From the NCBI RefSeq assembly GCF_001194135.2, contig NC_068994.1, forward strand, positions 38,416,343-38,480,342: DNA of 64,000 nucleotides, given 5' to 3'. This document shows, in pieces, positions 753 through 62,206 of the stretch. This stretch comes from Octopus bimaculoides (Eukaryota). The position numbers and the translations under genes are program-made. The notes beneath the pieces are model-generated. The model was not told the origin of the DNA and searched no databases. It saw nothing but the letters and a program-made list of their open reading frames with translations. How positions within the stretch are numbered: the first letter of the stretch is position 1; each line of letters begins with the position of its first letter.

Positions 753-834
753 AGTTTTATTTCATGCAAGATCACATGAACAGATAAACATGCAACGTTT
801 TCTTTGAATTTCCAAATAAATATAAGCAACTCAC

Positions 835-3185
835 CTGCTGAGGTCTTTTTAAAGTCAGCTCATTCCATCTATCAGCTGACATATTTCTGCAGTAAATACC
901 TTCCCTGTCTACCAATGGTTGCTGAGATGGCTTCAGCTTCCTCTCCATTGTGTACTGAACTCCAGAAGGAACACAAGTAGGATCAAATATATATTTTGAT
1001 TGGTTGTTTAATGCAGGTGTAACCTTGTGGTACATATCAACACTGTTGTTATAGTTGCTATCTGTCTGCTTCAGTCTATGAACTATACAGATTGATATAG
1101 AGATCACTATAACAACTGATACTATCACAGCTGCTATAACAATAACAATCATCACATTCAATTGGAGACCATTACTTGATTCCATTGTTGTCTTTGAAGG
1201 GGTCTTAAATATCTTTGATGTGTTGTTACTAACTGTTAGAGTCAAAGACAAAGTTGTTGTTGATGACAGAACTGGACTACCACTGTCTTTCACACCTAGT
1301 TCCAGTTCATAGNNNNNNNNNNNNNNNNNNNNNNNNNNNNNNNNNNNNNNNNNNNNNNNNNNNNNNNNNNNNNNNNNNNNNNNNNNNNNNNNNNNNNNNN
1401 NNNNNNNNNNNNNNNNNNNNNNNNNNNNNNNNNNNNNNAGTGGGGATGGTAGTGGACATTAAGACTGAAAGGGTTAACATTAGGGAAACTGAAATAGGGA
1501 GCATTATCATTTAAATCCATAACCTCAACAACAACATTTGCTGTGTTCTCCAGTGATGGTGTTCCTTTATCTTTTACTAAAACCTTAAACTCATACATGT
1601 TCTTTTCTTCTCTGTCTAGTGACTCAGTTGTGGAAATAAATCCCACATCAGATATCTGAAATGGTAGAATATGTTTTCCATTAGATAACAAAGAATAGGT
1701 TAATTGTCCTCCATCTCCAATATCTGGATCTGTAGCATTGACATATCCAACAGGGAAGTCTTTGTTTTCATTTTCATAGGTTAGAAACTTAAATATGTCC
1801 TGACTAAACTGAGGTTGTACATCGTTTATGTCAGTAACCAGCATAGAAAACTGTTTCTCTACTGTCAATGGAGGTAAACCATTATCTTGACATTTAATGG
1901 TGAAATTAAAACTCTTTTCAGTCTCTCTATCTATTTCACTCTTGACAACAACTTTGTATTTCTTTTTAGACACTGAGATTAGCTGAAGGTATCTGTTTTG
2001 TAAATGGCACTTCACTTGTCCATTTGCCCCACTGTCATTGTCAGTAACTTTCACATAAGCAACAAAACTGTAAATGTGAGTTCCTTCTGAGATGACAGCT
2101 GTGTTTCCAGTTGACTCTAAGATAAATCTGACATCAATATTTGGTGGATTGTTAAGGTGACTGATACCAATAATGTGAACCATAGCTGTTGAGGACATTG
2201 ATGGTTTACCATTATCTTTGGCCTCAACAAACAATTCATAGACTTTTCCTAAGTGAAAGTCCTCATTTAAAAATATTTCTCCAGTTACTTCATCCAATTT
2301 AAAACACTGTTTCATCTTATTTAGTGTTTTAGAACTAAAAATATAAGACATTTTTCCATTTTCCCCTACATCTAAGTCTGTAGCAGACAGTCTTACAACA
2401 GGTTTATTCGGCTTGTGTGTATCATTTAAAGTAACGTAGTATGTATCTTGGGAGAACAAAGGAATGTTATCATTTTTATCTTTCACCAATATCTTTACAT
2501 CAAGTACACTTTCTTTACGTGGTGTTCCCCCATCTATGGTAATCAACAGAATAGTATAAATCTCTTTTGTCTCACGGTCTAAGTTACCTTCCAAAATTAG
2601 TTCTAATAAATCTGTTCCATCTGATTTTTTAGAAACAAGCAATTTGAAAGGAGTGTCTTCATCCTGTTTGACTTGATAAAAGAGTTTAGAATTCTGGATA
2701 CTAACATCATTATCAATGGCATTTGGTAGTATTTCTTTTGTTCCTTTCAAATCATTTTCATCAAACTGCAGGTGAAATTGCTTGCTTGGAAATATAGGAT
2801 AATTATCATTGACATCTTCTATCATAACTTTGATTTCTAATATCTTGATAAAAGAATGGTCATATTGAACTGCAATTTCCAGTATTCTGAAACATTCTAC
2901 ATTATATTGACAAAGAGTTTCTGCATCCAATATGGCAGCTGTATATAGTTGTCCTCCAGATGTAACATTAAATAACTGAACAGTTCCATCAGTACCACCC
3001 TGGAGTATTTTAAATGTCGGTTTGTTGTTGTCACCCTGAGACTGTATATTATCTACTAAGTGTGTATCAGTAACAATATCTCCAATATAGCTGTGTATAT
3101 CATTGTTCTCTTTCACATGGTAGATATGATCCACACACCAGCAACTATCAGCTATCAACAACATCAACAATATCACTGACAACAT
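835..3185 (-). CDS. Protocadherin P1, large exon (signal peptide, EC1-EC6, TM, juxtamembrane tail); N-gap 1313-1438 inside EC6; exons 3-4 lie left of the window
   Basis: ORFs 1296..3215 and 772..1293 join across the gap. Motifs: EC1 C-x5-C (LCQYNVEC), DxNDNxP linkers, LDRE, TM VIVIAAVIVSVVIVISISICIV. Acceptor ttatcag|ATTGG (exon starts 3216), ATG at 3185, donor CAG|GTGAGT at 835. Replacing the 126 N with the 166 nt seen in P2 gives 2391 nt (797 codons, in frame). Confidence 0.92.
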
Positions 3186-6649: not shown

Positions 6650-6969
6650 TTAGTTTTGCACTGAAGATGGGGGAGGTACCTGTGATATTGAATGTACCTT
6701 TGGTAGTGTTGTTACTTTAGGTACAGCTGGTAGAGGTGGTTGACAGTTTGAAGTAAACTGACTTGTCATTGGCATTGAAGATGGTTGATCAGTTATGTCA
6801 GACGCGTTACCAGTTATATTCAAAGGTATTTGGTCATGGTAGGAGAAAGTGTTAGTGTCAACGTTTGGTTGATATTGATAGCCATTGTTATCTCCCCTTG
6901 ATCTGTTGAGCGTGTTTGGTGTTTGATTTCTCCTATTCCATGTGTGGTCACTTTGATAATGACGCAGAT
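6650..6969 (-). CDS. P2 terminal cytoplasmic exon 4 (DLRHYQSDHTW...PPLPAVPKVTTLPKV...VQN*); full P2 ~953 aa
   Basis: tatttctag|AT acceptor, phase 1 (G|AT=Asp), open to TAA at 6650. Homologous exons occur in P3-P6. Confidence 0.88.
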
Positions 6970-7827
6970 CTAGAAATAGATTGATTTTTAGGAAGTAAAT
7001 GTGGTAGAAGTTATACTGAATCAATTTTTAACGTTCATGAACACAACTGTATTTTAAGCACTTTTAGACCATACAGTGCTAATAATTTTGTGCATAGTTC
7101 CCAGGTTTGGCAGAATATCATTTTGTAATGCCACTGATAATTAACAAGAACTAAAATTGTTATCTTTTTTGCTTAACTTGTTTGTTGAACCATAACCATA
7201 CACCAAAATATTACTAAAATATATTTAAAATGTTAGTGAGTATATATTCATAAAAAAAAAACACTACTACAATTAATTTCAAAGTAAATGTTCCTTGTTC
7301 GAATCCAGTCCAGTATTACATGTATATTCAGAAATTAAACACTTGATCACTCAAATTAAACTAATCAAAACACCAAAATATAATGTATGTATAGCCAAAG
7401 CAGTCTCACACAGAAATGAGTATCACTTAATAATAACATGTATCATGATTTCACTTGATGCTGTTATGAGCAGGCACAGACAATATCTTGGCCCTCCTAC
7501 CCATTGAGCTAATGGAACATTAGAGATGTGATAGGTAAAGAGAGCAATGGCTACATTAGCACTTGCATGGTACTCATTTCTGCTGAGTAGATGAGTGCAG
7601 CATTAAATTATATACCTTGTTCAAGGACACAAGACACTTTCTAGTACAGAAACTGGACCCATAACTTTATGATTTTGAGCCCAACATTCTGCTACTGGGC
7701 TATTAAAAAACGTTGGCTCTCTAAAGATAAATTTGATAGTCAAGAGTAATTATGACTGTATTAATAATACTCATCATCAGTAGCATACATGTTACTAATG
7801 TAGAAACATTCAGTGTCTCTAACTTAC

Positions 7828-7978
7828 CTGGCAATTCTTCATAATGTCCAGCACTGCCGACACTCCATCTATGACCACTATCAATGTGAGATGACAATGT
7901 TGACCTCTCACTGAATCGGTCAGTACCATTAAGTTCTCTGTAACCTGGAGACATACTTTCTTCTCTTGAAACAAACAT
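7828..7978 (-). CDS. P2 cytoplasmic exon 3 (151 nt, MFVSREESMSPGYREL...GHYEELP)
   Basis: ctatccag|ATG acceptor and CCAG|GTAAGT donor. Homologous 151-nt exons recur in P3-P6, and the phase matches exon 2. Confidence 0.88.
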
Positions 7979-8501
7979 CTGGATAGAATTACATAAATCC
8001 AGTGTATCATCATAAAGTTTTACACTTATAAAATTAAACAAATACACAGCACAAGAGTTTAAACATGATATTAAAATATATGTTGGACTGTTTTTAACAT
8101 TTATAGAATAAATATACTTTTACTTTATGACACAGATATGACCATATCATAGAATATACAACATAGAAATAAATTTCATAATCATCAAAGAAAGCAACTG
8201 CATTGTGAATTTTACAATATTTGTTTTGCTTTATTTTATTTTTTTATTTTTTATATTTTTTGTTTTTGTTTTGGAAACAATCTATTAGATTTATTTAGAT
8301 TCAGTATTATATAACTACAACTAATAATTGTTTAGTTACTTTTCATTGATATTCAGGATCATGAAAAGTATTTTAAAGAATAAGGATTACATGAGAATAC
8401 TTTTACACAATAAGGAATTTAGTTTTGATTTTGGCAAAAGAAACAGAAGATGTATGATATTTTGCATTCAATTGTTTTAAGAAGTCTATCAATTATCTTA
8501 C

Positions 8502-10892
8502 CTGTGCATGAGGTCTTAAAACTGAGTGATCCCATCTATCACTTGCCGTGGTTCTATAGTGAAATTCTTCTGTATCTACTGATGGTTGTTGAGATTTCTT
8601 CAGATTTCTCTCCATTGCGTACTGAACTCCAGGAGGAACACAAGTAGGATCAAATATATATTTTGATTGTACGCTTAATGTAGGTGTCACTGTGTGGTAC
8701 ATATCAACACTACTATCATAGTTGCTATCTGTCTGCTTCAGTCTATGAACTATACAGATTGATATAGAGATTACTATAACAACTGACACAATCACAGCTG
8801 CTATAACAATAGCAATCATCACACTAGACTGGAGACCATTACTTGATTCTGTTGTTGTCTTTGAAGGGGTCTTAAATATCTTTGATGTGTTGTTACTAAC
8901 TGTTAGAGTCAAAGACAATGTTGTTGTCGATGACAGAACTGGACTGCCACTGTCTTTCACACCTAATTCCAGTTCATAGAATCCAGCATCGTTTTGGTAA
9001 GGTGAGCGAGAGAAAGATAAGGCACCAGAGTGATGGTTCATTTCAAATAAGTTTTTCTCATTTCCTCTGAGTATTTCATATGTGAGGAAGGCATTGTGTT
9101 GACTGTCTCTGTCAGAGGCCCTAACAACTGTGATATCATGGTCAGAGCGGGGATGGTAGTGGACATTAAGACTGAAAGGGTTAACATTAGGGAAACTGAA
9201 ATAGGGAGCATTATCATTTAAATCTATAACCTCAACAACAACATTTGCTGTGTTCTCCAGTGATGGTGTTCCTTTATCTTTTACTAAAACCTTAAACTCA
9301 TACATGTTCTTTTCTTCTCTGTCTAGTGACTCAGTTGTGGAAATAAATCCCACATCAGATATCTGAAATGGTAGAGTATCTTTTCCATTCGTCAACAGAG
9401 AATAGGTTAATTGTCCTCCATCTCCAGTATCTGGGTCTGTAGCATCAACATATCCCACAGGGAAGTCTTTGTGTTCATTTTCATAGGTGAGGAACTTATA
9501 TATGTCTTGAATAAACTGAGGTTGTACATCATTTATGTCAGTAACCAGCATAGAAAACTGTTTCTCCACTGTCAATGGAGGTAAACTATTATCTTGACAT
9601 TTAATGGTGAAATTTAATCTCTTCTCACTCTCTCTATCTATTTCACTCTTGACAACAACTTTGTATTTCTTTCCAGACAATGAAATTAGCTTAAGGTATT
9701 TATTTTGTAAATGACACTTCACTTGTCCATTTACTCCACTGTCATTGTCAGTAACTTTCACATAAGCAACAAAGCTGTGAATTTGAGTTCCTTCTGAGAT
9801 GACAGCTGTGTTTCCAGTTGACTCTAAGATAAATTTGACATCAATGTTTGGTGGATTGTTAAGGTGACTCATTCCATTAATAAGAACAGTGACAACAGAG
9901 GTCATTGGTGGTTTACCTTTATCACTGGCTTCAATGAATACTTCATAAAATTTTCGAAACTGAAATTCTTTTTTCAAAAATAGCTCTCCTGATGTTTGAT
10001 TTAAAATAAAGAATTTCATATCTTTTTCTGAAGTAAGAGGACTAAAATTATATACAATCGCTCCATTATCACCTTTGTCTAAATCCATTGCTGATAAAAT
10101 GACAATAGGTTTAGTTCTCTCTTGTGTCTCATTTACTGTCACCTTGTAGATATTCTGGGAAAATACAGGAGCATTGTCATTTTTATCTTCTACTAATATC
10201 CTTAAATCCATTAGCCCTTTCTTAGAATGAGATCCCCCATCTGTAGCAATTATTTGAAGATTATAAGTTTCCTTTCTCTCTCTGTCTAATCGTTTCACTA
10301 AAAGCAATTCAATTTTACTTTTCCTATTAGAAACTTTTGAGACCGACAATTGAAAAGTATTTTCCTGGTTATTCCTCAGTTGATAAGAAATATTTGAGTT
10401 CTGAATAGTGACATCTTTATCAAAGGCATTTGGAATGATCTCTTTTATTCCTTTTGGGGTACTTTCATCAAAGAGGATATGAAATTCCTTATCTGGAAAT
10501 ATGGGATAATTATCATTGACATCTTCTATCATAACTTTGATTTCTAATAACTTGATAAAAGAATGGCCATGCTGAACTGCTATTTCCAATATCCTGAAAC
10601 ATTCCACATTATATTGACACAGAGTTTCTGCATCCAATATGACAGCTGTATATAGTTGTCCTCCAGATGTAACATTGAATAACTGAACATCTCTGTCAGT
10701 ACTATGCTGCAGTATTTTAAATGAAAATTTGTTGCTATCATCCTGAGACTGTATATTATCCAGTAAGTTTGTATCACTGACAATATCTCCAATATAGCTG
10801 TGTCTATCATTGTTCTCTTTCACATGGAAGATATGATCTACACACCAGCATCTGTTAGCCATCAGGAGCACCAACATTATCATTAACAACAT
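8502..10892 (-). CDS. Protocadherin P2, large exon (SP, EC1-EC6, TM, juxtamembrane)
   Basis: Uninterrupted 799-aa ORF with six cadherin repeats and a TM. Acceptor ttttcag| (exon starts 10923), ATG at 10892, donor CAG|GTAAGA at 8502 (phase 0). Confidence 0.95.
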
Positions 10893-15153: not shown

Positions 15154-15476
15154 TTAGTTGTTTAGTGTAGATAGAATAGGTACCTGAGGTACTGAAGGTA
15201 CCTTTGGTAGTGTTGTTACTTTAGGTACAGCTGGCAGAGGTGGTTTACAGTCTGAAGTAAACTGACTTGTCATTGGTGCTATAGATGGTTGTTCAGTTAT
15301 GTTAGATGTGGTACTAGATATAGTCAAAGGCACATGGTCAGGATAACAGGAAGTGTTTGAGTCAATATAAGATTGATATTTATAGCCATTGTTGTTATCT
15401 CCCCTTGATCTATCAAGTGTGTGTGGAAGTCGATTCCTCCTACTCCATGTGAGATCACTTTGGTAACGGCATAGAT
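15154..15476 (-). CDS. P3 terminal exon 4 (DLCRYQSDLTWSRRN...KPPLPAVPKVTTLPKVP...LNN*); full P3 ~955 aa
   Basis: Not in the ORF track; translated by hand from atttccag|AT to TAA at 15154, in frame. Confidence 0.87.
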
Positions 15477-16023
15477 CTGGAAATATATTGGTTTATAAAC
15501 CATTTAAAATGCATTCTATACAATATGAACTGGAATTTCATTTCTAAGTTATGTCCATATCGAACCTTTGTTTACACATATCCATATATTGTTGAAACGG
15601 TGTATAAGTAGATATAAGTAATCATAAGATTGTTTACGTAAATTGACTGATTTTTCAGGAATGGAAACTTCAGTTTATAAAGGATCATTTTAAAAGATTT
15701 TTAAAGAGAAACCAAGCTGCACTATTCTTATATAACCACTTTTTTTATTTTCATTTTTAACTTCCTTATTGTGTGAAAGTTTTCAGACTATGTTGGCAAT
15801 CCTAAAGAAAATTTTCAAGTATAGAAGCATAAATCTGTCAGAAAACTTATAAGAAATTGCATTGTAATGCATGAAAAAGGAAAATATTCTCGATATATAT
15901 AAACAACAAACAAACAAAATAAAACAAGATGCTGTTTAAAAAATATATAGCCGTGACAATGGAATCTTTTTGTTGGCTAATGTTGTTAAGGCCATTCTAA
16001 GATTCTTCTGAATAGACTAAATA

Positions 16024-19016: not shown

Positions 19017-21410
19017 CTGTTCACATGGTTCAGTGAAAGCTGAATTACCCCATCTATCACATAACGCAGTTCTGCAGTGAATATCTTCCATGTCCACCGT
19101 TGGTTGTTGAGATTTGGTCATGTTTCTCTCTACTGTGTACTGAACTCCAGGAAGAACACAAGTAGGGTCAAATGTATATTTTGATTGGATGTTTAATGTA
19201 GGTGTAACCTTGTGGTACATATCAACACTATTATCATGGTTGCTATCTGTCTGCTTCAGTCTATGAACTATACAGATTGATATAGAGATCACTATAACAA
19301 CTGATACTATCACAGCTGCTATAACAATAACAATCATCACATTCAATTGGAGACCATTACTTGATTCTGTTGTTGTCTTTGAAGGGGTCTTAAACAACTT
19401 TGATGTGTTGTTACTAACTGTTAAAGTCAAAGAGAAAGTTGTTGTTGATGACAGAACTGGACTGCCACTGTCTTTCACACCTAATTCCAGTTCATAGAAT
19501 CCAGCATCATTTTGGTAAAGTGAGCGAGAGAAAGATAAGACACCAGAGTGATGGTTCATTTGAAATAAGTGTTTCTCATTTCCTCTGAGTATTTCATATG
19601 TGAGGAAGGCATTGTGTTGACTGTCTCTGTCAGAGGCCCTAACAACTGTGATATCATGGTCAGAGCGGGGATGGTAGTGGACATTAAGACTGAAAGGGTC
19701 AACATTAGGGAAACTGAAATAGGGAGAATTATCATTTAAATCCATAACCTCAACAACAACATTTGCTGTGTTCTCCAGTGATGGTGTTCCTTTATCTTTT
19801 ACTAAAACCTTAAACTCATACATGTTCTTTTCTTCTCTGTCTAGTGACTCAGTTGTGGAAATAAATCCCACATCAGATATCTGAAATGGTAGAACATCTT
19901 TTCCATTAGATAATAGAGAATAAGTTAATTGTCCTCCATCTCCAATATCTGGGTCTGTAGCATTGACATATCCAACAGGGAAGTCTTTGTGTTCATTTTC
20001 ATAGGTGAGAAACTTAAATGTGTCCTGACTAAACTGAGGTTGTACATCATTTATGTCGGTAACCAACATTGAAAACTGTTTCCGTACTTTCAATGGAGAT
20101 AAACCATTATCTTGACATTTAATCGTGAAATTAAATCTCTTCTCACTCTCTCTATCTATTTCACTCTTGACAACAACTTTGTATTTCTTTTCAGATATTG
20201 AGATAAGCTGAAGGTATCTATTTTGCAAATGGCACTTCACATGTCCATTTACTCCACTGTCATTGTCAATAACTTTGACATAAGCAACAAAGCTGTGAAT
20301 TTGAGTTGCTTCTGAGATGACAGCTGTGTTTCCAGTTGTCTTTAAAACAAATTTAACATCAATGTTTGGTGGATTGTTAAGATGACTGACACCATTTACA
20401 AGAACAGTAGCTCTTGAAATTCTGTGAGGAATGCCATTATCTTTGGCTTCAATAAATAATTTATATAATTTTCCAAACTTATATTCTTTTGTCATAAATA
20501 ATTCTCCAGTTACTTTATCTAATCTGAACAGTGTTTTCATTGTTTCTGGTGTTTTAGAACTAATTATGTATGAAATTCTCCCATTTTCTCCCTCATCCAT
20601 GTCTGTAGCAGAAAAAATGAATATAGGTTTGTTTATTTGGTGCTTATCGTTTACTGTTATATTGTAGATACTCTGAGAGAATACAGGTGAGTTATCATTT
20701 TTATCTTTCACTAAGATATTTATATCCATTACACCTTCCTTTGGTGGTGTTCCCCCATCTGTAGCAACTAGTTGGATGTGATAATTAGATTTTGTTTCTC
20801 GGTCTAGCTTGTTTTCCAAAACTAACTCGAGTAAATCAGTTTCACTTAAATCATGTGATAAGACCAATTTAAAAGGAATATCTTCATCCTCTTTGAATTT
20901 ATAATTGATCATTGTGTTCTGAATACTGACATCTTTATCAATGGCATTTGGAAGTATTTCTTTTGTTCCTATCAATGCATTTTCCTCATATTGCAAGTGA
21001 AATTCCTTATTTGGAAATATGGGAGAATTATCATTGGCATCTTCTATCATAACTTTGACTTCCAATATTTTCAGAAATGAATGGCCATGCTGAACTGCTA
21101 TTTCCAATATCCTGAAGCATTCCACGTTATATTGACACAGGGTTTCTGCATCCAGCATGGCAGCTGTGTATATTTGTCCTCCAGGTGTAACATTAAATAA
21201 CTGAACATCTCCATCAGTATTACCATGGAGTACATTAAATGTCAGTTTGTTGTTGTTATCCCGAGACTGTATATTATCCAGTAAATGTATATCAGTGACA
21301 ATATCTCCAATGTAACTGTTTAAATCATTGTTCTCTTTCACATTATAAATATGATCCACACACCAGCAGCTCTCAGCCATCAACAGCACCAACAATACCA
21401 TTGACAACAT
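19017..21410 (-). CDS. Protocadherin P3, large exon
   Basis: Within the 845-aa ORF. Acceptor catttcag| (exon starts 21444), ATG 21410 (MLSMVLLVLLMAESCWC), donor CAG|GTAAGA at 19017. Confidence 0.95.
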
Positions 21411-29290: not shown

Positions 29291-31687
29291 CTGTTGATGT
29301 TTTACTGAAGCTGGTTCAACCTGTCTATCATATGGCATAGTCCAGCAGTGAATATTTTCTCTGTCTACCATTGGTTGTTGATATTTCTTCACATTTCTTT
29401 CCAATGTGTATGAAATGCCAGGTGGAACACAAGCAGGATAAAACATATATCTTGATTGCATATTTAATGTGGGTATAACACCATGGTTCATATCAATACT
29501 ATTATCATAGTTGCTATCGGTATGATTTAGTCTATGAAGTACGCAGAATGTTATAGAGATCACTATAACAACAGATACGATCACAGCTGCTATAACAATA
29601 ATAATCATCACATTCAATTGGAGACCATTACTTGATTCTGTTGTTGTCTTTGAAGGGGTCTTAAATATCTTTGATGTGTTGTTACTAACTGTTAGAGTCA
29701 AAGACAACATTGTTGTTGATGACAGAACTGGATTACCACTATCTTTCACACCTAGTTCCAGTTCATAGAATCCAGCATCATTTTGGTAAGGTGAGCGAGA
29801 GAAAGATAAGACACCAGAGTGATGGTTCATTTGAAATAAGTGTTTCTCATTACCTCTGAGTATTTCATATGTGAGGAAGGCATTGTGTTGACTGTCTCTG
29901 TCAGAGGCCCTAACAACTGTGATATCATGATCAGTGTTGGGATGGTAGTGGACATTAAGACTGAAAGGGTCAACATTAGGGAAACTGAAATAGGGAGCAT
30001 TATCATTTAAATCCATAACCTCAACAACAACATTTGCTGTGTTCTCCAGTGATGGTGTTCCTTTATCTTTTACTAAAACCTTAAACTCATACACTTTCTT
30101 TTCTTCTCTGTCTAGTGACTCAGTTGTGGAAATAAATCCCACATCAGATATCTGAAATGGTAGAGTTTCCTTTCCATTTGTCAATAGAGAATAGGTTAAT
30201 TGTCCTCCATCTCCAATATCTGGGTCTGTAGCATTGACATATCCAACAGGGAAGTCTTTGTGTTCATTTTCATAGGTGAGAAACTTAAATATGTCCTGAC
30301 TAAACTGAGGTTGTACGTCATTTATATCAGTAACCAGCATAGAAAACTCTTTCTCTAGTGTCAATGGAGGTGAGCCATTATCTTGACATTTAATGGTGAA
30401 ATTAAAACTCTTTTCCCTCTCTCTATCTATTTCACTCTTGACAACAACTTTGTATTTCTTTACAGACTCTGAGATTAGCTGCAGGTATTTATTTTGTAAA
30501 TGACACTTCACTTGTCCATTTGCTCCACTGTCATTGTCAGTAACTTTGACAGAAGCAACAAAACTTTGAATTTGAGTTGCTTCTGAGATGACAGTTGTGT
30601 TTCCAGTTGACTTTAAGACAAATATGACATCAATGTTTGGTGGATTGTTAATGTGACTGATTCCATTTATAAAAACTGTGACTGTTGATGACATTGAAGG
30701 AGTACCATTATCTCTGGCATCAATAAATATCTCATAAATTTCACCAAAATTAAATTCTTTCTTCAAAAATAGCTCTCCTGTTGCCTCCTCTAATTTAAAG
30801 CTTTCTTTTATCCTTTCATGTGTTTTAGCAATATTAAAGACATAAGAAATTCTTCCATTTTCCCCTTTATCTAAGTCTGAAGCAGACACCCTAACAAGAG
30901 GCTTGTTTCTCTGGTATGTATCATTTACAGTGACATTATAATTATCCTGGGAGAAAACAGGGAGATTATCATTTTTATCTTTCACTAATATTTTTATATC
31001 CAATACACCTTTGTTTGGTGGAGATCCTTCATCTGTGGCAATTAACTGAATATTGTACATGTCTTTTGTCTCACGATCTAAGGAACCTACTAAAATTAGA
31101 TGCAATAAATCAGTTTCACCTGACTTAGAAACATTCAATTGAAAAGGAACATTTTCATTTTCCTTCAGTTGATAATTGAGTTTAGAATTCCGACAACTTA
31201 TATCTTTATCAGTTGCATATGGAATTCTTTCTTTGATTCCTTTTGTCACACTTTCATCATATGACACTTGAAATTCCTTCTCTTGGAAAGTAGGATAATT
31301 ATCATTGATATCATCTATTATAATTTTGAGTTCTAATATTTTGGTAAAAGAATGACCATGGTGAGCTGTTATTTCCAATATCCTGAAGCATTCCACATTA
31401 TATTGACAAAGAATTTCTGCATCCAATATGGCAGCTGTGTACAGTTTTCCTCCAGGTGTAACATTAAATAACTGAACACTTTCATCAGTGCTACCCTGGA
31501 GTATATTAAATGTCAGTTTGTTGCTATCATCCTGAGTCTGTTTATCATCCAGTAACTGTATATCAGTGACAATATCTCCAATATAGCTGTGTGTGTCATT
31601 GTTCTCTTTCACATGGTAGATATGATCCACACACCAGCAGCTGTCAGCCATTAACAACACCAACAGTATTACTGATAACATCTTCAT
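29291..31687 (-). CDS. Protocadherin P4, large exon
   Basis: Within the 818-aa ORF. Acceptor tatttcag| (exon starts 31706), first ATG 31687, donor CAG|GTGAGA at 29291. Confidence 0.95.
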
Positions 31688-34169: not shown

Positions 34170-34633
34170 NNNNNNNNNNNNNNNNNNNNNNNNNNNNNNN
34201 NNNNNNNNNNNNNNNNNNNNNNNNNNNNNNNNNNNNNNNNNNNNNNNNNNNNNNNNNNNNNNNNNNNNNNNNNNNNNNNNNNNNNNNNNNNNNNNNNNNN
34301 NNNNNNNNNNNNNNNNNNNNNNNNNNNNNNNNNNNNNNNNNNNNNNNNNNNNNNNNNNNNNNNNNNNNNNNNNNNNNNNNNNNNNNNNNNNNNNNNNNNN
34401 NNNNNNNNNNNNNNNNNNNNNNNNNNNNNNNNNNNNNNNNNNNNNNNNNNNNNNNNNNNNNNNNNNNNNNNNNNNNNNNNNNNNNNNNNNNNNNNNNNNN
34501 NNNNNNNNNNNNNNNNNNNNNNNNNNNNNNNNNNNNNNNNNNNNNNNNNNNNNNNNNNNNNNNNNNNNNNNNNNNNNNNNNNNNNNNNNNNNNNNNNNNN
34601 NNNNNNNNNNNNNNNNNNNNNNNNNNNNNNNNN
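34170..34633. other. Assembly gap (others: 1313-1438, 5332-5341, 38101-38438, 39634-39953, 48985-49484, 58266-58819, 60822-61052, 62070-62161)
   Basis: Runs of N. Confidence 0.98.
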
Positions 34634-38100: not shown

Positions 38101-39397
38101 NNNNNNNNNNNNNNNNNNNNNNNNNNNNNNNNNNNNNNNNNNNNNNNNNNNNNNNNNNNNNNNNNNNNNNNNNNNNNNNNNNNNNNNNNNNNNNNNNNNN
38201 NNNNNNNNNNNNNNNNNNNNNNNNNNNNNNNNNNNNNNNNNNNNNNNNNNNNNNNNNNNNNNNNNNNNNNNNNNNNNNNNNNNNNNNNNNNNNNNNNNNN
38301 NNNNNNNNNNNNNNNNNNNNNNNNNNNNNNNNNNNNNNNNNNNNNNNNNNNNNNNNNNNNNNNNNNNNNNNNNNNNNNNNNNNNNNNNNNNNNNNNNNNN
38401 NNNNNNNNNNNNNNNNNNNNNNNNNNNNNNNNNNNNNNTATATATATATATATATATATATTGCACTTAAGTATAGCTATACTAAAACTAGCTGCTAGAC
38501 CTCAATTTACATACACTTTAAAATAAAATGTCAGTCAAATACTAGATTGGAATATGAATTAAGGAATTGGACTCTCTTAGTCATTTTCACTAGATTGCAG
38601 CTGCTTCTGTAACAGGAAGCAATACACTCAGAGCTGAGTGTCGGAGGAAAATCCTATTATTCATTGGAAGCACTAAAAACTGAAAAGTGTCGCTCGCATC
38701 TCAACTATAAATTGATGGCCCAACAACAGGATATTTTCTCTTGTTTAAGTGAACCTCTAGAATTCATCTCCTTCGTTTCGAACTCATACCTTACAGAGTA
38801 TGCATTCTTCTCACAAGGAAATACACGGTCTTCTTTCAAGTAATCTCCTTTGAAGCCATATCCTCTCATCATGTCAACTGTCAACGTTTTGCCAGTAAAT
38901 TCACATTGGAGCATTTCCAACATGGCGTCTGTCTTCATCTTCCTCACTGGTTCTTCCCGTGCAATCACCACTGAGCATGCGCAGTATAATAAGCACCCTA
39001 AATCTCGACAGTTTTCTATTGCATTCACCTGTCTCGAATTTTCCATGTGACTGGACTTTGACAGCCATGCAGAACAGCGTTATCATCAACACCACCAATA
39101 CCGCTGCCACAGCCTTTGTACCTGACTACAGTGCTAACACCACCACCACTTCACCACTAATCTCAACTCATTCCTGCTCCATCTTCTGTACAGCAACTGG
39201 TTTTGTGGCTTTATACATCAAATTCCAGTCACTCTGAGAATGGCACAGTTGGATGGCACTTTAAGTGCTGGAAGGCAATGCTGGTAACGATTACGCTCTA
39301 ATGGTGCTATTTACGGGACACTAGCACGGAAGCCAGACAGCTGCTCTGGCAATGTACCCGCTCGACAGTGCTGTTAATGCTCCACTGGCACGCTGAC

Positions 39398-39633: not shown

Positions 39634-39957
39634 NNNNNNNNNNNNNNNNNNNNNNNNNNNNNNNNNNNNNNNNNNNNNNNNNNNNNNNNNNNNNNNNNNN
39701 NNNNNNNNNNNNNNNNNNNNNNNNNNNNNNNNNNNNNNNNNNNNNNNNNNNNNNNNNNNNNNNNNNNNNNNNNNNNNNNNNNNNNNNNNNNNNNNNNNNN
39801 NNNNNNNNNNNNNNNNNNNNNNNNNNNNNNNNNNNNNNNNNNNNNNNNNNNNNNNNNNNNNNNNNNNNNNNNNNNNNNNNNNNNNNNNNNNNNNNNNNNN
39901 NNNNNNNNNNNNNNNNNNNNNNNNNNNNNNNNNNNNNNNNNNNNNNNNNNNNNTATA

Positions 39958-48580: not shown

Positions 48581-51153
48581 CTGATTGTTTTCTCTTGAAG
48601 CCTGATCATCCCATCTATAAGACATAGTTCTGCAGTGAATATTGTCTCTGTCTACTATTGGTTGTTGAGATTTCTTCACATTTCTCTCCACTGTGTACTG
48701 AACTCCAGGAGGAACACAGGTAGGGTCAAATGTATAATTTGATTGGATGTTTAATGTAGGTGTAACTTTGTGATACATATCAACACTGTTGTTATAGTTG
48801 CTATGTGTCTGCTTCAGTCTATGAACTATACAGATTGATATAGAGATCACTATAACAATTGATACTATCACAGCTGCTATAACAATAACAATCATCACAT
48901 TAAATTGGAGGCCATTACTTGATTCCAGTGTTGTCTTTGAAGGTGTCTTAAACATCTTTGTGTTGTTACTAACTGTTAGAGTCANNNNNNNNNNNNNNNN
49001 NNNNNNNNNNNNNNNNNNNNNNNNNNNNNNNNNNNNNNNNNNNNNNNNNNNNNNNNNNNNNNNNNNNNNNNNNNNNNNNNNNNNNNNNNNNNNNNNNNNN
49101 NNNNNNNNNNNNNNNNNNNNNNNNNNNNNNNNNNNNNNNNNNNNNNNNNNNNNNNNNNNNNNNNNNNNNNNNNNNNNNNNNNNNNNNNNNNNNNNNNNNN
49201 NNNNNNNNNNNNNNNNNNNNNNNNNNNNNNNNNNNNNNNNNNNNNNNNNNNNNNNNNNNNNNNNNNNNNNNNNNNNNNNNNNNNNNNNNNNNNNNNNNNN
49301 NNNNNNNNNNNNNNNNNNNNNNNNNNNNNNNNNNNNNNNNNNNNNNNNNNNNNNNNNNNNNNNNNNNNNNNNNNNNNNNNNNNNNNNNNNNNNNNNNNNN
49401 NNNNNNNNNNNNNNNNNNNNNNNNNNNNNNNNNNNNNNNNNNNNNNNNNNNNNNNNNNNNNNNNNNNNNNNNNNNNNNNNNNNNCCATAACCTCAACAAC
49501 AACATTTGCTGTGTTCTCCAGTGATGGTGTTCCTTTATCTTTTACTAAAACCTTAAACTCATACATGTTCCTTTCTTCTCTGTCTAGCGACTCAATTGTA
49601 GAAATAAATCCCACATCAGATATCTGAAATGGTAGAATATCTTTACCATTCGTCAATAAAGAATAGGTTAATTGTCCTCCATCTCCAATATCTGGATCTG
49701 TAGCATCAACATATCCCACAGGGAAGTCTTTGTGTTCATTTTCATAGGTGAGAAACTTAAATATGTCCTGACTAAATTGAGGTTGGACATCATTCGTGTC
49801 AGTGACCAGCATTGAAAATTCTTTCTCTATTGTCAATGGAGGTAAACCATTATCTTGACATTTAATGGTGAAACTAAAGCTCTTTTCACTCTCTCTATCT
49901 ATTTCACTCTTGACAACAACTTTGTATTTCTTTTCAGACATTGAGATTAGCTGCAGGTATTTATTTTGTAAATGACACTTCACTTGTCCATTTACGCCAT
50001 TGTCATTGTCAATAACTTTGACATAAGCAACAAAGCTGTGAATTTGAATTGCTTCTGAGATGGCCGTTTTGTTTCCTGCTGACTTTAAAACAAATTTTAC
50101 ATGAATTTTTGGTGGACTATTAAGGTAACTGACCCCATTAATAAGGATGGTGGCTGTTGAAGACATAGGTATTTTTCCATTATCCGTGGCTTCAACAGAC
50201 AATTTATAGATTTTTCCAAATTCAAATTCTTTCTTTACAAATAATTCTCCAGATGTTTGATTTAAAATAAAGAATTTCTTATCTTTATCTAAGGTATCAG
50301 GACTGAATGTATATAGAATTTGTCCATTAGTACCCTGGTCTACATCTGTGGCAGTTAAATTTAAAATAGGTTTGTACAAATCCTGTGTATCTTTTACTGT
50401 GACATTATAAATACTTTGGGAGAACACAGGTGCATTGTCATTTTTATCTCTTACTAAAATATGTATCTCCATACCTGCTTGTTTTGGAGGGGATCCTCCA
50501 TCTGTAGCCATTAGATGAAGATAATAATTTTTCTTCATTTCTCTGTCTAGTTTTCCATTCAGAATTAATTCGATCTTACTTTTCCGGTCAGAAACTTCTA
50601 TTACCATTAACTGGAAAGTATTATTATTATTATTCCTCAGTTCATAAGAAAGCTTTGAGTTCTGAATACTGACATCTTTGTCAATGGCATTTAAAACTAT
50701 TTCTTTTGTTCCAATCAATACGTTTTCATCATATTGCAGGTGAAATTCTTTCTCTGGAAATATGGGATAATTGTCATTGACATCTTCTATCATAACTTTG
50801 ATTTCTAATATTTTGGTAAAAGAATGACCATGGTGAACTGCTATTTCCAATATCCTGAAACAATCCACATTATATTGACAAAGAATTTCTGCATCCAATA
50901 TGGCAGCTGTGTACAGTTGTCCTCCAGGTGTAACATTAAATAACTGAATAGTTCCATCAGTGCTACCCTGGAGTATATTAAATGTCAGTTTGTTGCTGTT
51001 GTCTTGAGACTGTATATTATCCAGTAAGTGTGTATCAGTGACAATATCTCCAATATAGCTGTGTGTGTCATTGTTCTCTTTCACATGGTAGATATGATCC
51101 ACACACCAGCAACTTTCTTCCATTAACAACATCAACAATATTAAGGTAAACAT
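48581..51153 (-). CDS. Protocadherin P5, large exon; N-gap 48985-49484 covers EC6
   Basis: ORFs 48982..51204 and 48572..48955. Acceptor catttcag| (exon starts 51185), ATG 51153, donor CAG|GTAAGA at 48581. Substituting the P2-equivalent 312 nt for the gap gives 2385 nt (795 codons, in frame). Confidence 0.92.
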
Positions 51154-57809: not shown

Positions 57810-60418
57810 CTCTGGATGTGTTTCAATGAAAGCTGGTTTACCCCATCTATCACTGCAGTGAACACCTTCTATATCCATCATTGGTTGTTGAGATTTGTTC
57901 ATGTTTCTCTCCAATGTGTACTGAATACCAGGAGGAACAAATGTATACTTTGGTTGGATGTTTAATGTAGGTGTAACCTTGTGGTACATATCAACACTAC
58001 TATTATAGTTGCTATCTGTCTGCTTCAGTCTATGAACTATACAGATTGATATAGAGATCACTATAACAATTGATATGATCACAGCTGCAACAACAATAAC
58101 AATCATCACATTCAATTGGAGACCATTACTTGATTCTGTTGTTGTCTTTGAAGGGGTCTTAAATATCTTTGATGTGTTGTTACTAACTGTTAGAGTCAAA
58201 GACAAAGTTGTTGTTGATGACAGAACTGGACTGCCACTGTCTTTCACACCTAATTCCAGTTCATANNNNNNNNNNNNNNNNNNNNNNNNNNNNNNNNNNN
58301 NNNNNNNNNNNNNNNNNNNNNNNNNNNNNNNNNNNNNNNNNNNNNNNNNNNNNNNNNNNNNNNNNNNNNNNNNNNNNNNNNNNNNNNNNNNNNNNNNNNN
58401 NNNNNNNNNNNNNNNNNNNNNNNNNNNNNNNNNNNNNNNNNNNNNNNNNNNNNNNNNNNNNNNNNNNNNNNNNNNNNNNNNNNNNNNNNNNNNNNNNNNN
58501 NNNNNNNNNNNNNNNNNNNNNNNNNNNNNNNNNNNNNNNNNNNNNNNNNNNNNNNNNNNNNNNNNNNNNNNNNNNNNNNNNNNNNNNNNNNNNNNNNNNN
58601 NNNNNNNNNNNNNNNNNNNNNNNNNNNNNNNNNNNNNNNNNNNNNNNNNNNNNNNNNNNNNNNNNNNNNNNNNNNNNNNNNNNNNNNNNNNNNNNNNNNN
58701 NNNNNNNNNNNNNNNNNNNNNNNNNNNNNNNNNNNNNNNNNNNNNNNNNNNNNNNNNNNNNNNNNNNNNNNNNNNNNNNNNNNNNNNNNNNNNNNNNNNN
58801 NNNNNNNNNNNNNNNNNNNCTCATACATGTTCTTTTCTTCTCTGTCTAGTGATTCAGTTGTGGAAATAAATCCCACATCAGATATCTGAAATGGTAGAAT
58901 ATCTTTTCTATTTGTCAATAGAGAATAGGTTAATTGTCCTCCATCTCCAATATCTGGGTCTGTAGCATTGACATATCCAACAGGGAAGTCTTTGTGTTCA
59001 TTTTCATATGTGAGAAACTTAAATATGTCCTGACTAAACTGAGGTTGTACGTCATTTATATCAGTGACCAGCATAGAAAATTCTTTCTCCACTGTCAATG
59101 GAGGTAAACCATTATCTTGACATTTAATGGTGAAATTAAATCTCTTCTCACTCTCTCTATCTATTTCACTCTTGACAACAACTTTGTATTTCTTTTCAGA
59201 CATTGAGATTATCTGCAGGTATCTATTTTGTAAATGACACTTCACTTGTCCATTTACTCCACTGTCATTGTCAGTAACTTTGACATAAGCAACAAAGCTG
59301 TGAATTTGAGTTGCTTCTGAGATGACAGCTGTGTTTCCAGTTGACTTAATTACAAATTTGACATCAATGTCAGGTCGATTGTTAATGTGACTGATTCCAT
59401 TTATTAGAATAAGGACTGTTGAAGACATTGAAGGAATACCATTATCTCTAGCATCAACAAATAATTTATAAATTCTTCCAAACTGAAAATTTTGCTTTAG
59501 AAACAATTCTCCTGTTGCTTCATCCAACTTAAACCAACGTTTTACAGTACCCAGTGTCTTGGCATTATTAAAGACATAAGAAATTCTTCCATTTTCTCCT
59601 TCATCTAAATCTGTAGCAGACAGCCTCAGAATAGGTTTGTTTATCTGGTGTGTATCATTTATAGTTACATTATAGATATTCTGAGAGAATATAGGAGAAT
59701 TATCATTTTCATCTTGCACTGATATTTCTATATTCAGTATGCCTTCTTTTGGTGGAGATCCTCCATCTTTGGCAATTAATTGAATATCATAAAGATCTTG
59801 TGTTTCACGATCTAAGTTTCCTTCCAGAATTAATTGTAGTACATCACTTCCATCTGATTTTTTAGTTACTAGAAGTTGAAATGGAATATCCACATTATTT
59901 TTTAATTTATAAGAAATCTTTGAATTCTCAATACTGACATCTTTATCAAAGGCATTTAGAATTCTTCCTTTTGAGTCTTTTGAATCACTTTCATCAAATG
60001 TTAAATGAAATTCTGTGTTGGGAAAAATAGGATAATTATCATTGACATCTTCTATTATAACTTTGATTTCTAATATCCTAATAACAGAATAGCCATGTTG
60101 AATGGCTATTTCCAATATCTTGTAACATTCCACATTATATAGACACAGGGTTTCTGCATCCAATATGGCAGCTGTGTACAGTTGTCCTCCAGGTGTAACA
60201 TTGAATAACTGAACAGTTCCCTCAGTACTACCCTGGAGTACATTAAATGTCAATTTGTTGCTATCATCCTTAGACTGTATATTATCCAATAAGTGTGTAT
60301 CAGTGGCGATATCTCCAATATAACTGTTTGTATCATTATTCTCTTTCACATAGTATGTATGATCTACACACCAACAGCTACCAGGCAGAAACAACATCAA
60401 CAATAACGCTGGGAACAT
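57810..60418 (-). CDS. Protocadherin P6, large exon; N-gap 58266-58819 covers end of EC5 and most of EC6
   Basis: ORFs 58250..60490 and 57786..58247. Acceptor ttttgcag| (exon starts 60425), ATG 60418, donor GAG|GTAAAA at 57810. Substituting the P2-equivalent 318 nt gives 2373 nt (791 codons, in frame). Confidence 0.92.
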
Positions 60419-61859
60419 TTTCTGTCTGCAAAAGAATTTTATAGGGAGATAAGCAAATGAAAACTTAATAAATGCACATAAATATAGCATAATATATAGT
60501 CCAATAACTTAACCACATTTGAGATATTGTTTACATGCTACAAGTAGTTAAATATCAACATCAAATATACAACTGGCAACAGTACTATGATACTATGTTG
60601 TAATTTGGTTAATTCACTGGAAATGAAAGTCACTAGACACATACGTTTTTCAGCCTTTACCTATTTAATATGACATCATTGATTACTGACTGATTGAATA
60701 ACATAGAATGATATACATAACTATTATATCACACAGTTTAACACTGGAACTATTATTTTTCCATATTCACATAAACTTTACTACCCCTTCACCATGTCTA
60801 ATCCTCTGAACCACTTCTCTTNNNNNNNNNNNNNNNNNNNNNNNNNNNNNNNNNNNNNNNNNNNNNNNNNNNNNNNNNNNNNNNNNNNNNNNNNNNNNNN
60901 NNNNNNNNNNNNNNNNNNNNNNNNNNNNNNNNNNNNNNNNNNNNNNNNNNNNNNNNNNNNNNNNNNNNNNNNNNNNNNNNNNNNNNNNNNNNNNNNNNNN
61001 NNNNNNNNNNNNNNNNNNNNNNNNNNNNNNNNNNNNNNNNNNNNNNNNNNNNACATAAACTTTACTACCCCTTCACCATGTCTAATCCTCTGAACCACTT
61101 CTCTTATTTTCACCTTTCTTTAACTTGGTGGTATGTATTCACAGCTCTTCACCATCTTTTATCTTCCAACCGAGGTAGCCATGTATCTCTTCTACTGCAA
61201 GTTGCCCTTTTCTGTTTCTTTATCATATTTTAACTGCTTGTCACCTGGCATAAAGCCACCTTTCTTAATACTCCACCTTGCCCATCAGCTGAAGGGTTTC
61301 GTCTTGCAAGTTACTTAATGAGCTCACTTGTGCAATGCTATATAAAATTTACTCAGTACACACTGTGAAGTGTCTGGCTTTAAGAAGAGCATCCAGCTGT
61401 AAAACTGTACCAAAGCAGAAACTGCCTTGTTGGCTCTTGCCAACCTGACCAACCAATGCACACATTGAAAACAGACATTAAATAACATCTACTAAAGAAA
61501 GCATTCTTTTTTTTTCCACAGATTTGGAATTATTAGTAATTCTAATGTAATTATGCATGTCAAATGTTGGATGACTCATTCTATTTTGAATGACGATTTC
61601 TTTTCTTTCTATCTTTTTACTTGTTTTGGTTATTAGACTGTAGCAATGCTGGGGCACTACCTTTAAGAATTGTTTGTCAAATGAATCGATCGCAGGACTT
61701 ATGTTTTTTTTAAGCCTGGCACTTATTTTATCAGTCTCTTTTGCTGAATCACTAAGTTATGGGGACATAAACACACTAACACCAGTTGTCAAGCAGTGGT
61801 GGGTGAGAAATACAGACATAATATATACATATATATATGTGTGTGTGTATGTGTATACA

Positions 61860-62069: not shown

Positions 62070-62206
62070 NNNNNNNNNNNNNNNNNNNNNNNNNNNNNNN
62101 NNNNNNNNNNNNNNNNNNNNNNNNNNNNNNNNNNNNNNNNNNNNNNNNNNNNNNNNNNNNNTCCATCTACCGGATCCACTCACAAGACTTTGGTTGGCCA
62201 GAGGCT

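Follow-up and report, generated by a model that had tools for sequence, protein, structure and literature searches.

Cephalopod protocadherins (Pcdhs) are a standard case of convergent expansion of neuronal recognition molecules, although their adhesive behaviour has not been tested experimentally (PMC6339937). A first-pass annotation of an Octopus bimaculoides locus proposed that the EC3-EC4 junction of its protocadherins is without canonical calcium ligands and acts as a hinge. We asked whether this is so, how widely the feature is shared and how many ions such a junction would hold.

Six tandem protocadherin genes in one window

The window, the whole 64-kb stretch of DNA analysed, holds six tandem protocadherin genes (P1–P6), all on the minus strand. 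They have the protocadherin layout, with the whole ectodomain and transmembrane (TM) segment in one large exon and the genes in a tandem array. P2 matches the EC1-6 structures 6vg1 and 6e6b end-to-end, and its translation reads as six EC repeats in tandem, then a single TM helix, visible as a hydrophobic stretch, and a non-catenin-type tail, as is characteristic of protocadherins. Pfam returned five PF00028 stretches in P2; in addition, PF23592 covers aa 557-648 (EC6), and PF08266 matches aa 22-106 (EC1) marginally. No seventh copy, additional or pseudogenised, was found within the window, and the plus strand of 9700-10300 contains no ORF of at least 40 aa. A vertebrate-type clustered locus, with variable exons spliced to shared constant exons, was considered and rejected, as P2 (7829-7981 and 6653-6970) and P3 (15157-15483) carry their own downstream exons.

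Table 1. Coordinates of the protocadherin features within the window.
Feature	Position	Strand	Remarks
P2 large first exon/ORF: signal peptide, EC1-EC6, TM, start of cytoplasmic tail	8493..10892	-	UniRef A0A0L8H7U2 (Octopus bimaculoides), 100% identity
EC3 of P2 (aa 243-341)	9870..10166	-	Alignment to EC3 of 6vg1, 6e6b, 5co1; Foldseek
P2 XEX-equivalent N254-E255-T256, base of EC3	10125..10133	-	N-D-T, N-D-K or K-D-T in other paralogs
P2 DXE-equivalent E309-F310-Q311 (canonical D-x-E)	9960..9968	-	Under DFE of 6vg1
P2 EC3-EC4 linker S342-H-L-N-N-P-P348, in place of DxNDNxP	9849..9869	-	N345 invariant, 236/236 relatives
P2 linker GMSHLNNPP	9849..9869 (SHLNNPP part)	-	Six-paralog alignment
P2 EC4 DXD D382-N383-D384, retained	9741..9749	-	Site-3 and site-2 ligands; alignment
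P2 EC4 C393 ('VKCHL')	9714..9716	-	Invariant 236/236; possible partner of C432
P2 EC4 C432	9597..9599	-	Invariant; replaces Ala of AxDxG, directly before XDX ligand
P2 EC4 XDX Q433-D434-N435, retained	9588..9596	-	D434 is site-3 ligand; alignment
P1 EC3-4 linker GISHLNNPP	2142..2168	-	
P3 EC3-4 linker GVSHLNNPP	20367..20393	-	
P4 EC3-4 linker GISHINNPP	30638..30664	-	
P5 EC3-4 linker GVSYLNSPP	50110..50136	-	
P6 EC3-4 linker GISHINNRP	59372..59398	-	

The EC3-EC4 junction departs from the canonical motifs

Translation of 9849-10160 (minus strand) yields P2 residues 245-348, that is EC3 and the EC3-4 linker, ending in INGMSHLNNPP, in agreement with the annotated position. In the phmmer alignment to Xenopus Pcdh8.1 EC1-6 (6vg1), S-H-L-N-N lies under D-V-N-D-N and E-F-Q under D-F-E, which indicates that the domain numbering and motif registers are right; the motif register is common to three independent alignments. 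As annotated, all six paralogs carry G(M/I/V)S(H/Y)(L/I)N(N/S)xP instead of DxNDNxP, in a linker of normal length without insertions, and the XEX Glu, present in P2, is replaced by Asp in the other five. The annotation also stated that EC3 has no DRE motif. This holds in part: the aligned triplet is degenerate, reading (D/E/N)(F/Y)(H/Q/K/N/E), but its first acidic residue survives as Asp or Glu in five of the six paralogs and the second (Glu) only in P5. The remaining four junctions, along with the EC4 motifs DND and QDN, are canonical, again as annotated. The XEX-equivalent site doubles as an N-x-T sequon in four of the six.

The best sequence and fold matches of the octopus genes are vertebrate clustered and delta2 Pcdh structures (such as 6e6b, 6vg1, 6vg4, 5szq and 6pgw), with which they have in common six ECs, an ectodomain encoded by one large exon, tandem arrays and greatest diversity in EC2-EC3. 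Comparison with vertebrate clustered and delta Pcdhs, which the annotation had proposed, brings out a difference: XEX, DXE and DXNDN at EC3-4 are canonical in all the vertebrate structures whose alignments were inspected, unlike in octopus. A conserved, Ca2+-poor joint in the presumed EC1-4 recognition unit is a concrete structural difference from every vertebrate Pcdh structure inspected, and a reason not to assume, untested, that the rigid-rod model of vertebrates holds in cephalopods.

The trait is shared across the sampled coleoid protocadherins

We took a census of 236 coleoid sequences, made up of sets of 126 and 110 homologues. At EC3-4, the XEX Glu was found in 5 of the 236, the DXE Asp in 11 and the DXE Glu in 9, while linker Asp1 and Asn3 were present in 5 and 4, respectively. 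Linker Asp4 was absent throughout, the fourth position being Asn in all 236 sequences. Position by position, the canonical side-chain ligand of EC3 or the linker is present in 0-8% of the 126 set and 0-5.5% of the 110 set; all five acidic ligands of this region are missing from 80 of the 126 sequences, and Lys occupies the first DXE position in 102/236. Matching positions at the other four junctions are ~90-100% canonical, except the fifth linker position, which is variable at EC1-2 and EC4-5. Judged from these counts, ligand loss at EC3-4 is far beyond chance. On the EC4 side, the two DXD aspartates are present in 236/236 and 231/236 sequences and XDX in 236/236, and the fifth linker Asn, which binds via its backbone, is kept in 84% of relatives. 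A canonical three-Ca2+ junction combines XEX and DXE on one repeat, a DXNDN linker, and DXD and XDX on the following repeat. For EC3-4 it was rejected: XEX, DXE and DXNDN deviate in each of the six paralogs and in ~92-100% of the sequences of either homologue set.

The annotation had presented the trait as a property of the six paralogs in the window, which proved too narrow: it is family-wide, present in every coleoid protocadherin sampled, and the motif recurs in orthologues of four other named species. The P1–P6 subfamily retains more acidic residues than the other relatives sampled. Matches to cephalopod-derived queries were cephalopod sequences only, among the best 120 listed. A search of protein representatives with the P2 ectodomain returned mostly giant Fat/Dachsous/CDH23-like cadherins, because their summed multi-domain scores outrank those of protocadherins.

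The amino acids of the linker are conserved beside an EC3 whose synonymous sites are saturated. The motif that has taken the place of DxNDNxP, (N/S)-x-(Q/H/L)-N-N-x-P, is itself under purifying selection. Asn345 and Pro348 are invariant among relatives. Strict conservation of N-N-x-P is equally compatible with a fixed, protein-stabilised geometry.

Comparison with known atypical linkers

The closest parallel is PCDH15 EC5-6, a partial Ca2+-free linker with a modified XEX, no DRE and PPNNQ for DXNDN, which retains DXD/XDX, binds one Ca2+ at site 3 and has been seen in three different orientations (Choudhary et al. 2020, PMC7547225). Octopus EC3-4 shows the same loss pattern, with Asn at the fourth linker position and DXD/XDX kept. 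By sequence it falls within the partial Ca2+-free class, in which ligands of one repeat and of the linker are lost and DXD/XDX of the next repeat are kept. The two differ in that PCDH15 belongs to another cadherin subfamily, as an 11-EC tip-link protein under mechanical load with a different replacement sequence, whereas the octopus joint, characterized here through sequence and models, sits in what is presumed to be the recognition region of a protocadherin with six ECs. PCDH15 EC3-4, with D-x-N-N-Q, is flexible and binds two ions at sites 2 and 3 (Powers et al. 2017, as cited in PMC7547225). It shares the Asp4-to-Asn change and, by coincidence, the EC3-4 position; the change described in that citation is confined to the linker motif, while in octopus linker Asp1 and Asn3 are gone as well, and so, for the most part, are XEX and DXE.

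Fully Ca2+-free linkers (DN-cadherin EC2-3, PCDH15 EC9-10, CELSR EC5-6, LI-cadherin EC2-3 and those of Fat/Dachsous) have lost the acidic linker ligands, as in octopus, and form a hinge or bend. These precedents agree with the annotation's statement that Ca2+-free linkers in Drosophila N-cadherin and PCDH15 allow bending. In PCDH15 EC9-10, DXD and XDX are lost too (PMC5120219), and special elements, a 3-10 helix and an FG-alpha loop, contribute to the interface. In octopus, DXD/XDX remain and the joint is free of insertions. Assignment to the fully Ca2+-free type, in which all five motifs are lost, was rejected, EC4 DXD/XDX being 98-100% conserved. In CELSR, a Ca2+-free hinge lies inside an antiparallel adhesive dimer and straightens upon binding (PMC10160967).

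The full-text literature searched, including PMC6339937, PMC9795677 and PMC10084454 (Albertin et al. 2015 and Wang & Ragsdale 2017 fell outside its scope), says nothing about the calcium motifs or linkers of cephalopod Pcdhs. The octopus EC3-4 linker is apparently an undescribed example of a known cadherin linker class.

Structure models

Structure prediction, one of the checks that the annotation had named, speaks for it in one respect. AlphaFold2 gives the EC3-4 linker a pLDDT of 63, the lowest of five, vs 72-90 at the other four. The two-domain EC3-4 model (pLDDT 90.5, pTM 0.56) superimposes on canonical Pcdh EC3-4 pairs in Foldseek with TMq 0.55-0.74 and rmsd 3.9-6.7 Å, values that point to an extended but reoriented pair; the AlphaFold2 models are ion-free, and their geometry was read from Foldseek TM and rmsd values. 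The predicted pair is extended and not L- or V-shaped, and its fit to straight pairs does not suggest a sharp bend of ~80-90 degrees. In the full-length model, EC3-6 lies near vertebrate EC3-6 crystal structures (TMt 0.72-0.79) and the kink is at the canonical EC2-3 junction, so the model does not point to EC3-4 as the place of bending. The modelled EC2-3 kink may be a ghost of inter-chain coevolution.

Predicted calcium occupancy and alternative explanations

With moderate confidence, we favour the reading that EC3-4 of the six genes and of the sampled coleoid expansion is a partial Ca2+-free linker. It would be less stiff than the four remaining junctions, each with three ions, and probably more flexible than its counterpart in vertebrate protocadherins. 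The ligands of sites 1 and 2 (XEX Glu, DXE Asp/Glu, linker Asp1 and Asp4) have given way to uncharged or basic residues, whereas those of site 3 atop EC4 (DXD, XDX and, at the fifth linker position, the backbone) are strictly kept, from which a single ion at site 3 is predicted. The window subfamily, with its Asp/Glu at XEX and the first DXE position, might weakly hold a second ion at site 2. The annotation was right about the missing EC3-side and linker ligands, but by its EC4 motifs the junction is not predicted to be Ca2+-free. A hinge at EC3-4 is plausible by analogy with known linkers and fits the lowest AlphaFold2 confidence, although the full-length model bends elsewhere. We infer flexibility at this joint in the unbound monomer and an ability to straighten in a trans dimer, so that the antiparallel EC1-4 binding mode need not change. 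If the single ion and the antiparallel dimer both hold, the case would be a small extension of the list of atypical cadherin linkers.

One point against the one-ion prediction is that Asn and Gln, too, can coordinate Ca2+ through their side chains. Cephalopod extracellular Ca2+ is ~10 mM and could fill weak sites. An ordinary junction of normal stiffness might then persist, its Asn/Gln/Asp/Glu substitutes making two or three sites in the high-Ca2+ body fluid and the changes reflecting neutral or affinity-tuning drift. The largely isosteric substitutions (D to N, N to Q), which preserve oxygen ligands, the acidic residues left in the window subfamily and the two ions reported for PCDH15 EC3-4 in the citation above all fit this view. 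We nevertheless judge it unlikely, given the many sequences devoid of all five acidic ligands, the frequent Lys in place of Asp, the replacement of the Asn3 ligand by Leu/Ile in the window subfamily and the single ion bound by PCDH15 EC5-6 with the same pattern. Equally improbable is a fully Ca2+-free but rigid joint, in which N-N-x-P, the frequent Lys and the EC4 acidic residues build a protein-only interface fixing one angle, as in PCDH15 EC9-10 or DN-cadherin EC2-3. Stable bent Ca2+-free linkers have precedent, Asn345 and Pro348 do not vary, and the Lys could pair with EC4 aspartates; yet known linkers of this kind, PCDH15 EC9-10 at least, are without the DXD/XDX that octopus retains, neither an insertion in the linker nor a 3-10 helix or additional loop is present in octopus, and the models are extended, with low pTM.

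The annotation went on to suggest that the hinge implies a trans geometry unlike the vertebrate EC1-EC4 antiparallel dimer, for instance an EC1-3-only or bent interface. The joint does lie within the EC1-4 span, and EC4 sits in a homogenised block while EC2-3 is diversified. However, the extended EC3-4 model, the CELSR hinge within an antiparallel dimer and a diversity pattern resembling that of vertebrate clustered Pcdhs all argue against this proposal, which we did not adopt and regard as unlikely. Degeneration or artefact, through decaying paralogs or misaligned motifs, has a negligible chance of being the explanation and is ruled out by the conservation data: three of the six ORFs (~2.4 kb each, head-to-tail) are interrupted, but by assembly gaps only, the ORFs being otherwise intact with a dN/dS of 0.2-0.34, and both the orthologues in other species and the shared alignment register count against it.

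Domain diversity and EC4 cysteines

Across the octopus ECs, diversity is highest in EC2-EC3, intermediate in EC1 and EC4 and lowest in EC5-6. Vertebrate clustered Pcdhs have a similar pattern, with EC2-3 highest. The 3' boundary of the diversified EC2-EC3 cassette coincides exactly with the EC3-4 joint. A more far-reaching and rather improbable reading joins these features: coleoids would have fixed a Ca2+-depleted EC3-EC4 hinge at the origin of the expansion, between a freely diversifying EC2-EC3 recognition cassette and a gene-converted EC4-EC6 stalk, as a conformational switch with a trans geometry or avidity unlike the rigid vertebrate EC1-4 dimer. If true, it would represent an independent structural solution to neuronal self-recognition. 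The switch might be stapled by a cephalopod-specific EC4 disulfide, for which C393 and C432 are a possible pair. MI with APC over 233 sequences (Neff 144) gave a signal made up mostly of subfamily-defining EC5-6 substitutions. A small excess for EC1-EC4 (0.93%) and EC2-EC3 (0.81%), against 0.2-0.6% for other partners, is only suggestive.

Calcium ligands at the EC3-4 junction

In a canonical cadherin junction, three Ca2+ ions (sites 1-3) are bound by the XEX and DXE motifs of one repeat, a DXNDN linker and the DXD and XDX motifs of the next. The first-pass annotation reported that the junction between the third and fourth extracellular cadherin repeats (EC3-4) lacks canonical ligands in six tandem protocadherin genes (P1-P6; P2 is the reference copy), and this observation is confirmed. 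The interval assigned to it (9849-10160, minus strand) is correct, translating to P2 residues 245-348 with EC3 ending ...VLINGMSHLNNPP, and a six-way alignment recovered the linker G-(M/I/V)-S-(H/Y)-(L/I)-N-(N/S)-x-P in all six copies. The motif register was set by phmmer alignments to solved structures, in which N-E-T of P2 lies under the XEX glutamate; in the alignment with 6vg1, S-H-L-N-N lies under D-V-N-D-N and E-F-Q under D-F-E. Relative to DXNDN, Asp1 is replaced by Ser, Asn3 by Leu or Ile and Asp4 by Asn, while Asn5 is unchanged. As annotated, the XEX glutamate is Glu in P2 only and Asp in the other five paralogs. EC3 also lacks a DRE motif, the triplet reading (D/E/N)(F/Y)(H/Q/K/N/E), but an acidic residue still occupies its first position in five of six paralogs and its third in P5 only. 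Canonical ligands are present at the remaining four junctions, and the EC4 motifs, DND and QDN, are canonical too, again as described. In four of six paralogs the degenerate XEX doubles as an N-x-T sequon for glycosylation (NET or NDT), which would place a possible glycan at the EC3 base, beside the calcium-poor joint.

Sequence comparison indicates that ligand loss at EC3-4 is conserved in the coleoid protocadherin family and not peculiar to the six paralogs. We aligned P1-P6 with the best 120 homologues of P2 (n = 126; sources include O. bimaculoides, O. sinensis, O. vulgaris, Argonauta hians and the cuttlefish Acanthosepion pharaonis) and, for every one of the five junctions, scored ten ligand positions. 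At EC1-2, EC2-3, EC4-5 and EC5-6, every side-chain ligand was 90-100% canonical. At EC3-4, the canonical residue was present in 4% (XEX Glu), 8% (DXE Asp), 2% (DXE Glu), 2% (linker Asp1), 0% (Asn3) and 0% (Asp4, Asn in 126/126) of sequences, while EC4 DXD was canonical in 100% and 98% and XDX in 100%. A second set of 110 new sequences, retrieved with a cuttlefish protein as seed and 54-67% identical to it, agrees with the first, linker position 4 being Asn in 110/110. In the pooled 236 sequences, which include the six window genes (three of them also among the database entries), Asp4 is Asn in 236/236, whereas the XDX Asp is retained in 236/236 and the DXD residues in 236/236 and 231/236. Linker length is unaltered. 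Vertebrate protocadherins are canonical at EC3-4 in all alignments inspected.

The most frequent replacement linker is N-Q-(Q/H)-N-N-(A/P)-P. The window subfamily (P0001-P0017, at least 67% identical to P2, Argonauta orthologues included) instead carries S-H-(L/I)-N-N-P-P and has lost fewer EC3-side acidic residues than other family members: most of its sequences keep two of five acidic ligands (1-3 in the window copies), while 80 of the 126 sequences keep none. Members with S-H-L-N-N occur in O. sinensis, O. vulgaris and Argonauta hians, all other matches being about 50% identical, and the subfamily is therefore older than the Octopus/Argonauta split. The replacement motif is also under constraint: the linker residues hardly vary among P1-P6, beside an EC3 saturated at synonymous sites.

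The fifth linker position normally binds via its backbone carbonyl. At EC4-5, 113/126 sequences have Val there (DxNDV; P2 aa 452-456), and at EC1-2 roughly half have His (DxNDH; P2 aa 124-128), changes that are probably harmless, yet a conserved family signature.

Linker class and predicted ion occupancy

The EC3-4 pattern matches that of a partial Ca2+-free linker, with ligands of repeat n and the linker lost and those of repeat n+1 retained. Atypical and Ca2+-free cadherin linkers are already well known as a class, and the closest documented case is PCDH15 EC5-6, which likewise keeps DXD and XDX of the next repeat. There, XEX is YTD, DRE is IVG, DXNDN is PPNNQ, and EC6 DXD and XDX remain; crystals contain one Ca2+, at site 3, with EC5 and EC6 in three different orientations (PMC7547225). 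In the fully Ca2+-free PCDH15 EC9-10, DXD and XDX are gone too, and a bend of about 90 degrees is held by a dedicated 3-10 helix and FG-alpha loop (PMC5120219). Octopus EC3-4 differs from the latter in retaining both motifs.

Across the 236 sequences the EC4 aspartates are almost absolutely conserved, which argues for a continuing role, the simplest being Ca2+ binding at site 3. Such a role would predict a single Ca2+ held at the EC3-4 joint, with a weak second ion possible in the window subfamily, which has Asp or Glu at XEX and the first DXE position. The joint is predicted to be less stiff than the four three-ion joints.

The searchable literature on cephalopod protocadherins yielded no reference to their calcium motifs or linkers; in Styfhals et al. 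2019 and Jiang et al. 2022, the words calcium, Ca2+ and linker are absent and EC3 is unmentioned. As the joint lies within the presumed recognition unit of proteins from a widely discussed convergent expansion, and can be tested directly, the finding is of moderate interest.

Structure prediction and binding geometry

Structure prediction is compatible with an ill-defined joint at EC3-4, but does not prove the suggested hinge. In an AlphaFold2 model of the P2 ectodomain (aa 18-668; 115-sequence alignment; mean pLDDT 81.8, pTM 0.45), the ten-residue block with the EC3-4 linker has a pLDDT of 63, the lowest among the five linkers (others 88, 72-77, 83 and 86-90). Using Foldseek against the PDB, EC3-6 of the model fell on vertebrate EC3-6 (TMt 0.72-0.79, rmsd 5-7 Å), while EC1-4 and EC1-6 templates matched half of the model only (TMt about 0.42-0.54, rmsd about 50 Å). 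These values indicate a model that is more or less extended at EC3-4, with its kink at the canonical EC2-3 junction. The kink would put EC2 on EC3 and EC1 on EC4; we conjecture that it may stem from coevolution across an antiparallel dimer, taken by the model for contacts within one chain. A two-domain EC3-4 model (pLDDT 90.5, pTM only 0.56) gave TMq 0.55-0.74 and rmsd 3.9-6.7 Å against canonical Pcdh EC3-4 pairs; as modelled, the joint is extended and moderately reoriented, neither L- nor V-shaped.

A different trans-binding geometry, which the annotation had drawn from the hinge, found no support in paralog domain diversity or the CELSR precedent. Identity among the six paralogs is 0.79 in EC1, 0.56 in EC2, 0.57 in EC3, 0.85 in EC4, 0.93 in EC5 and 0.94 in EC6, presumably the order seen in vertebrate clustered protocadherins, whose specificity resides in EC2-3 within an EC1-4 antiparallel dimer. 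In a crude covariation analysis, the EC1-EC4 and EC2-EC3 excess was weak. The single Ca2+-free linker of CELSR cadherins (EC5-6) lies inside an antiparallel dimer, and is a flexible hinge in the monomer but shows no extensive kink in the dimer (PMC10160967). For octopus EC3-4, the simplest interpretation would be a joint that is floppy in the free protein and straightens upon trans binding, which, if true, could tune affinity.

Paralog divergence and EC4 cysteines

Synonymous divergence among P1-P6 is about 1.1 in EC2 and EC3, 0.30 in EC1, 0.22 in EC4, 0.15 in EC5 and 0.09 in EC6. It steps at P2 aa ~140-160 and at aa ~340-350 (nt ~9843-9875), at the atypical linker, and third-position identity rises from about 0.7 to about 0.9 exactly there. 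Low values in EC1 and EC4-6 beside high values in EC2-3 suggest that gene conversion homogenises the former and spares a diverging EC2-3 cassette.

Two EC4 cysteines, C393 and C432, are invariant in 236/236 cephalopod sequences. C432 stands for the Ala of AxDxG, directly ahead of the XDX ligand; inspected vertebrate Pcdh structures share the first Cys and have Ala at the second position. The pair is a candidate disulfide, possibly adjoining Ca2+ site 3.

Organization of the gene array

The 64-kb window holds six ORFs of 639-845 codons, head-to-tail on the minus strand. P2 has five PF00028 cadherin stretches, a CELSR2-9th-type match (aa 557-648) and a marginal Cadherin_2 match (aa 22-106) in Pfam, and aligns end to end with EC1-6 structures of Xenopus Pcdh8.1 (6vg1), human PCDH10 (6vg4) and mouse gammaB4 (6e6b). 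On the basis of ORF layout, Pfam and these alignments, P1-P6 are six-EC protocadherins in a tandem array; the nearest relatives of P2, from O. sinensis, O. vulgaris and Argonauta hians, carry protocadherin annotations. P1, P5 and P6 are broken by assembly gaps only. The TTG and GTG starts listed for the ORFs, and their long N-terminal extensions, are artefacts that arise from a bacterial start-codon rule; in-frame ATGs lie close upstream of the signal peptide.

The large exon ends in a conserved ...QVR, which would fit a splice donor, and small 3' exons, separate for each gene, encode the remainder of the cytoplasmic tail. Constant exons common to several genes, as in vertebrate clustered loci, are thus absent within the window. 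Between P4 and P5 (31706-48981, 17 kb), tblastn found neither protocadherin-like coding sequence nor pseudogene. Three assembly gaps fall inside this interval, and its 2-kb blocks alternate between GC-richer (about 0.37-0.39) and AT-rich (about 0.26-0.28).

Coordinates of features in the window
Feature	Position (nt)	Strand	Remark
P2 ORF	8493-10892	minus	100% identity to UniRef A0A0L8H7U2, Octopus bimaculoides
P2 ectodomain, modelled	8889-10841	minus	
P1 downstream exon	832-1299		
P2 downstream exons	6653-6970, 7829-7981		
P3 downstream exon	15157-15483		
P1 N-x-T sequon at XEX	2418-2429		
P2 N-x-T sequon at XEX	10125-10133		N254-E255-T256
P4 N-x-T sequon at XEX	30917-30928		
P6 N-x-T sequon at XEX	59651-59662		
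P2 EC4-5 linker	9525-9539		
P2 C393	9714-9716	minus	matching position in all paralogs
P2 C432	9597-9599	minus	matching position in all paralogs
N runs (assembly gaps) in EC5/EC6 of P1, P5, P6	1313-1438, 48985-49484, 58266-58819		
Further N runs	34170-34633, 38101-38438, 39634-39953, 60822-61052, 62070-62161
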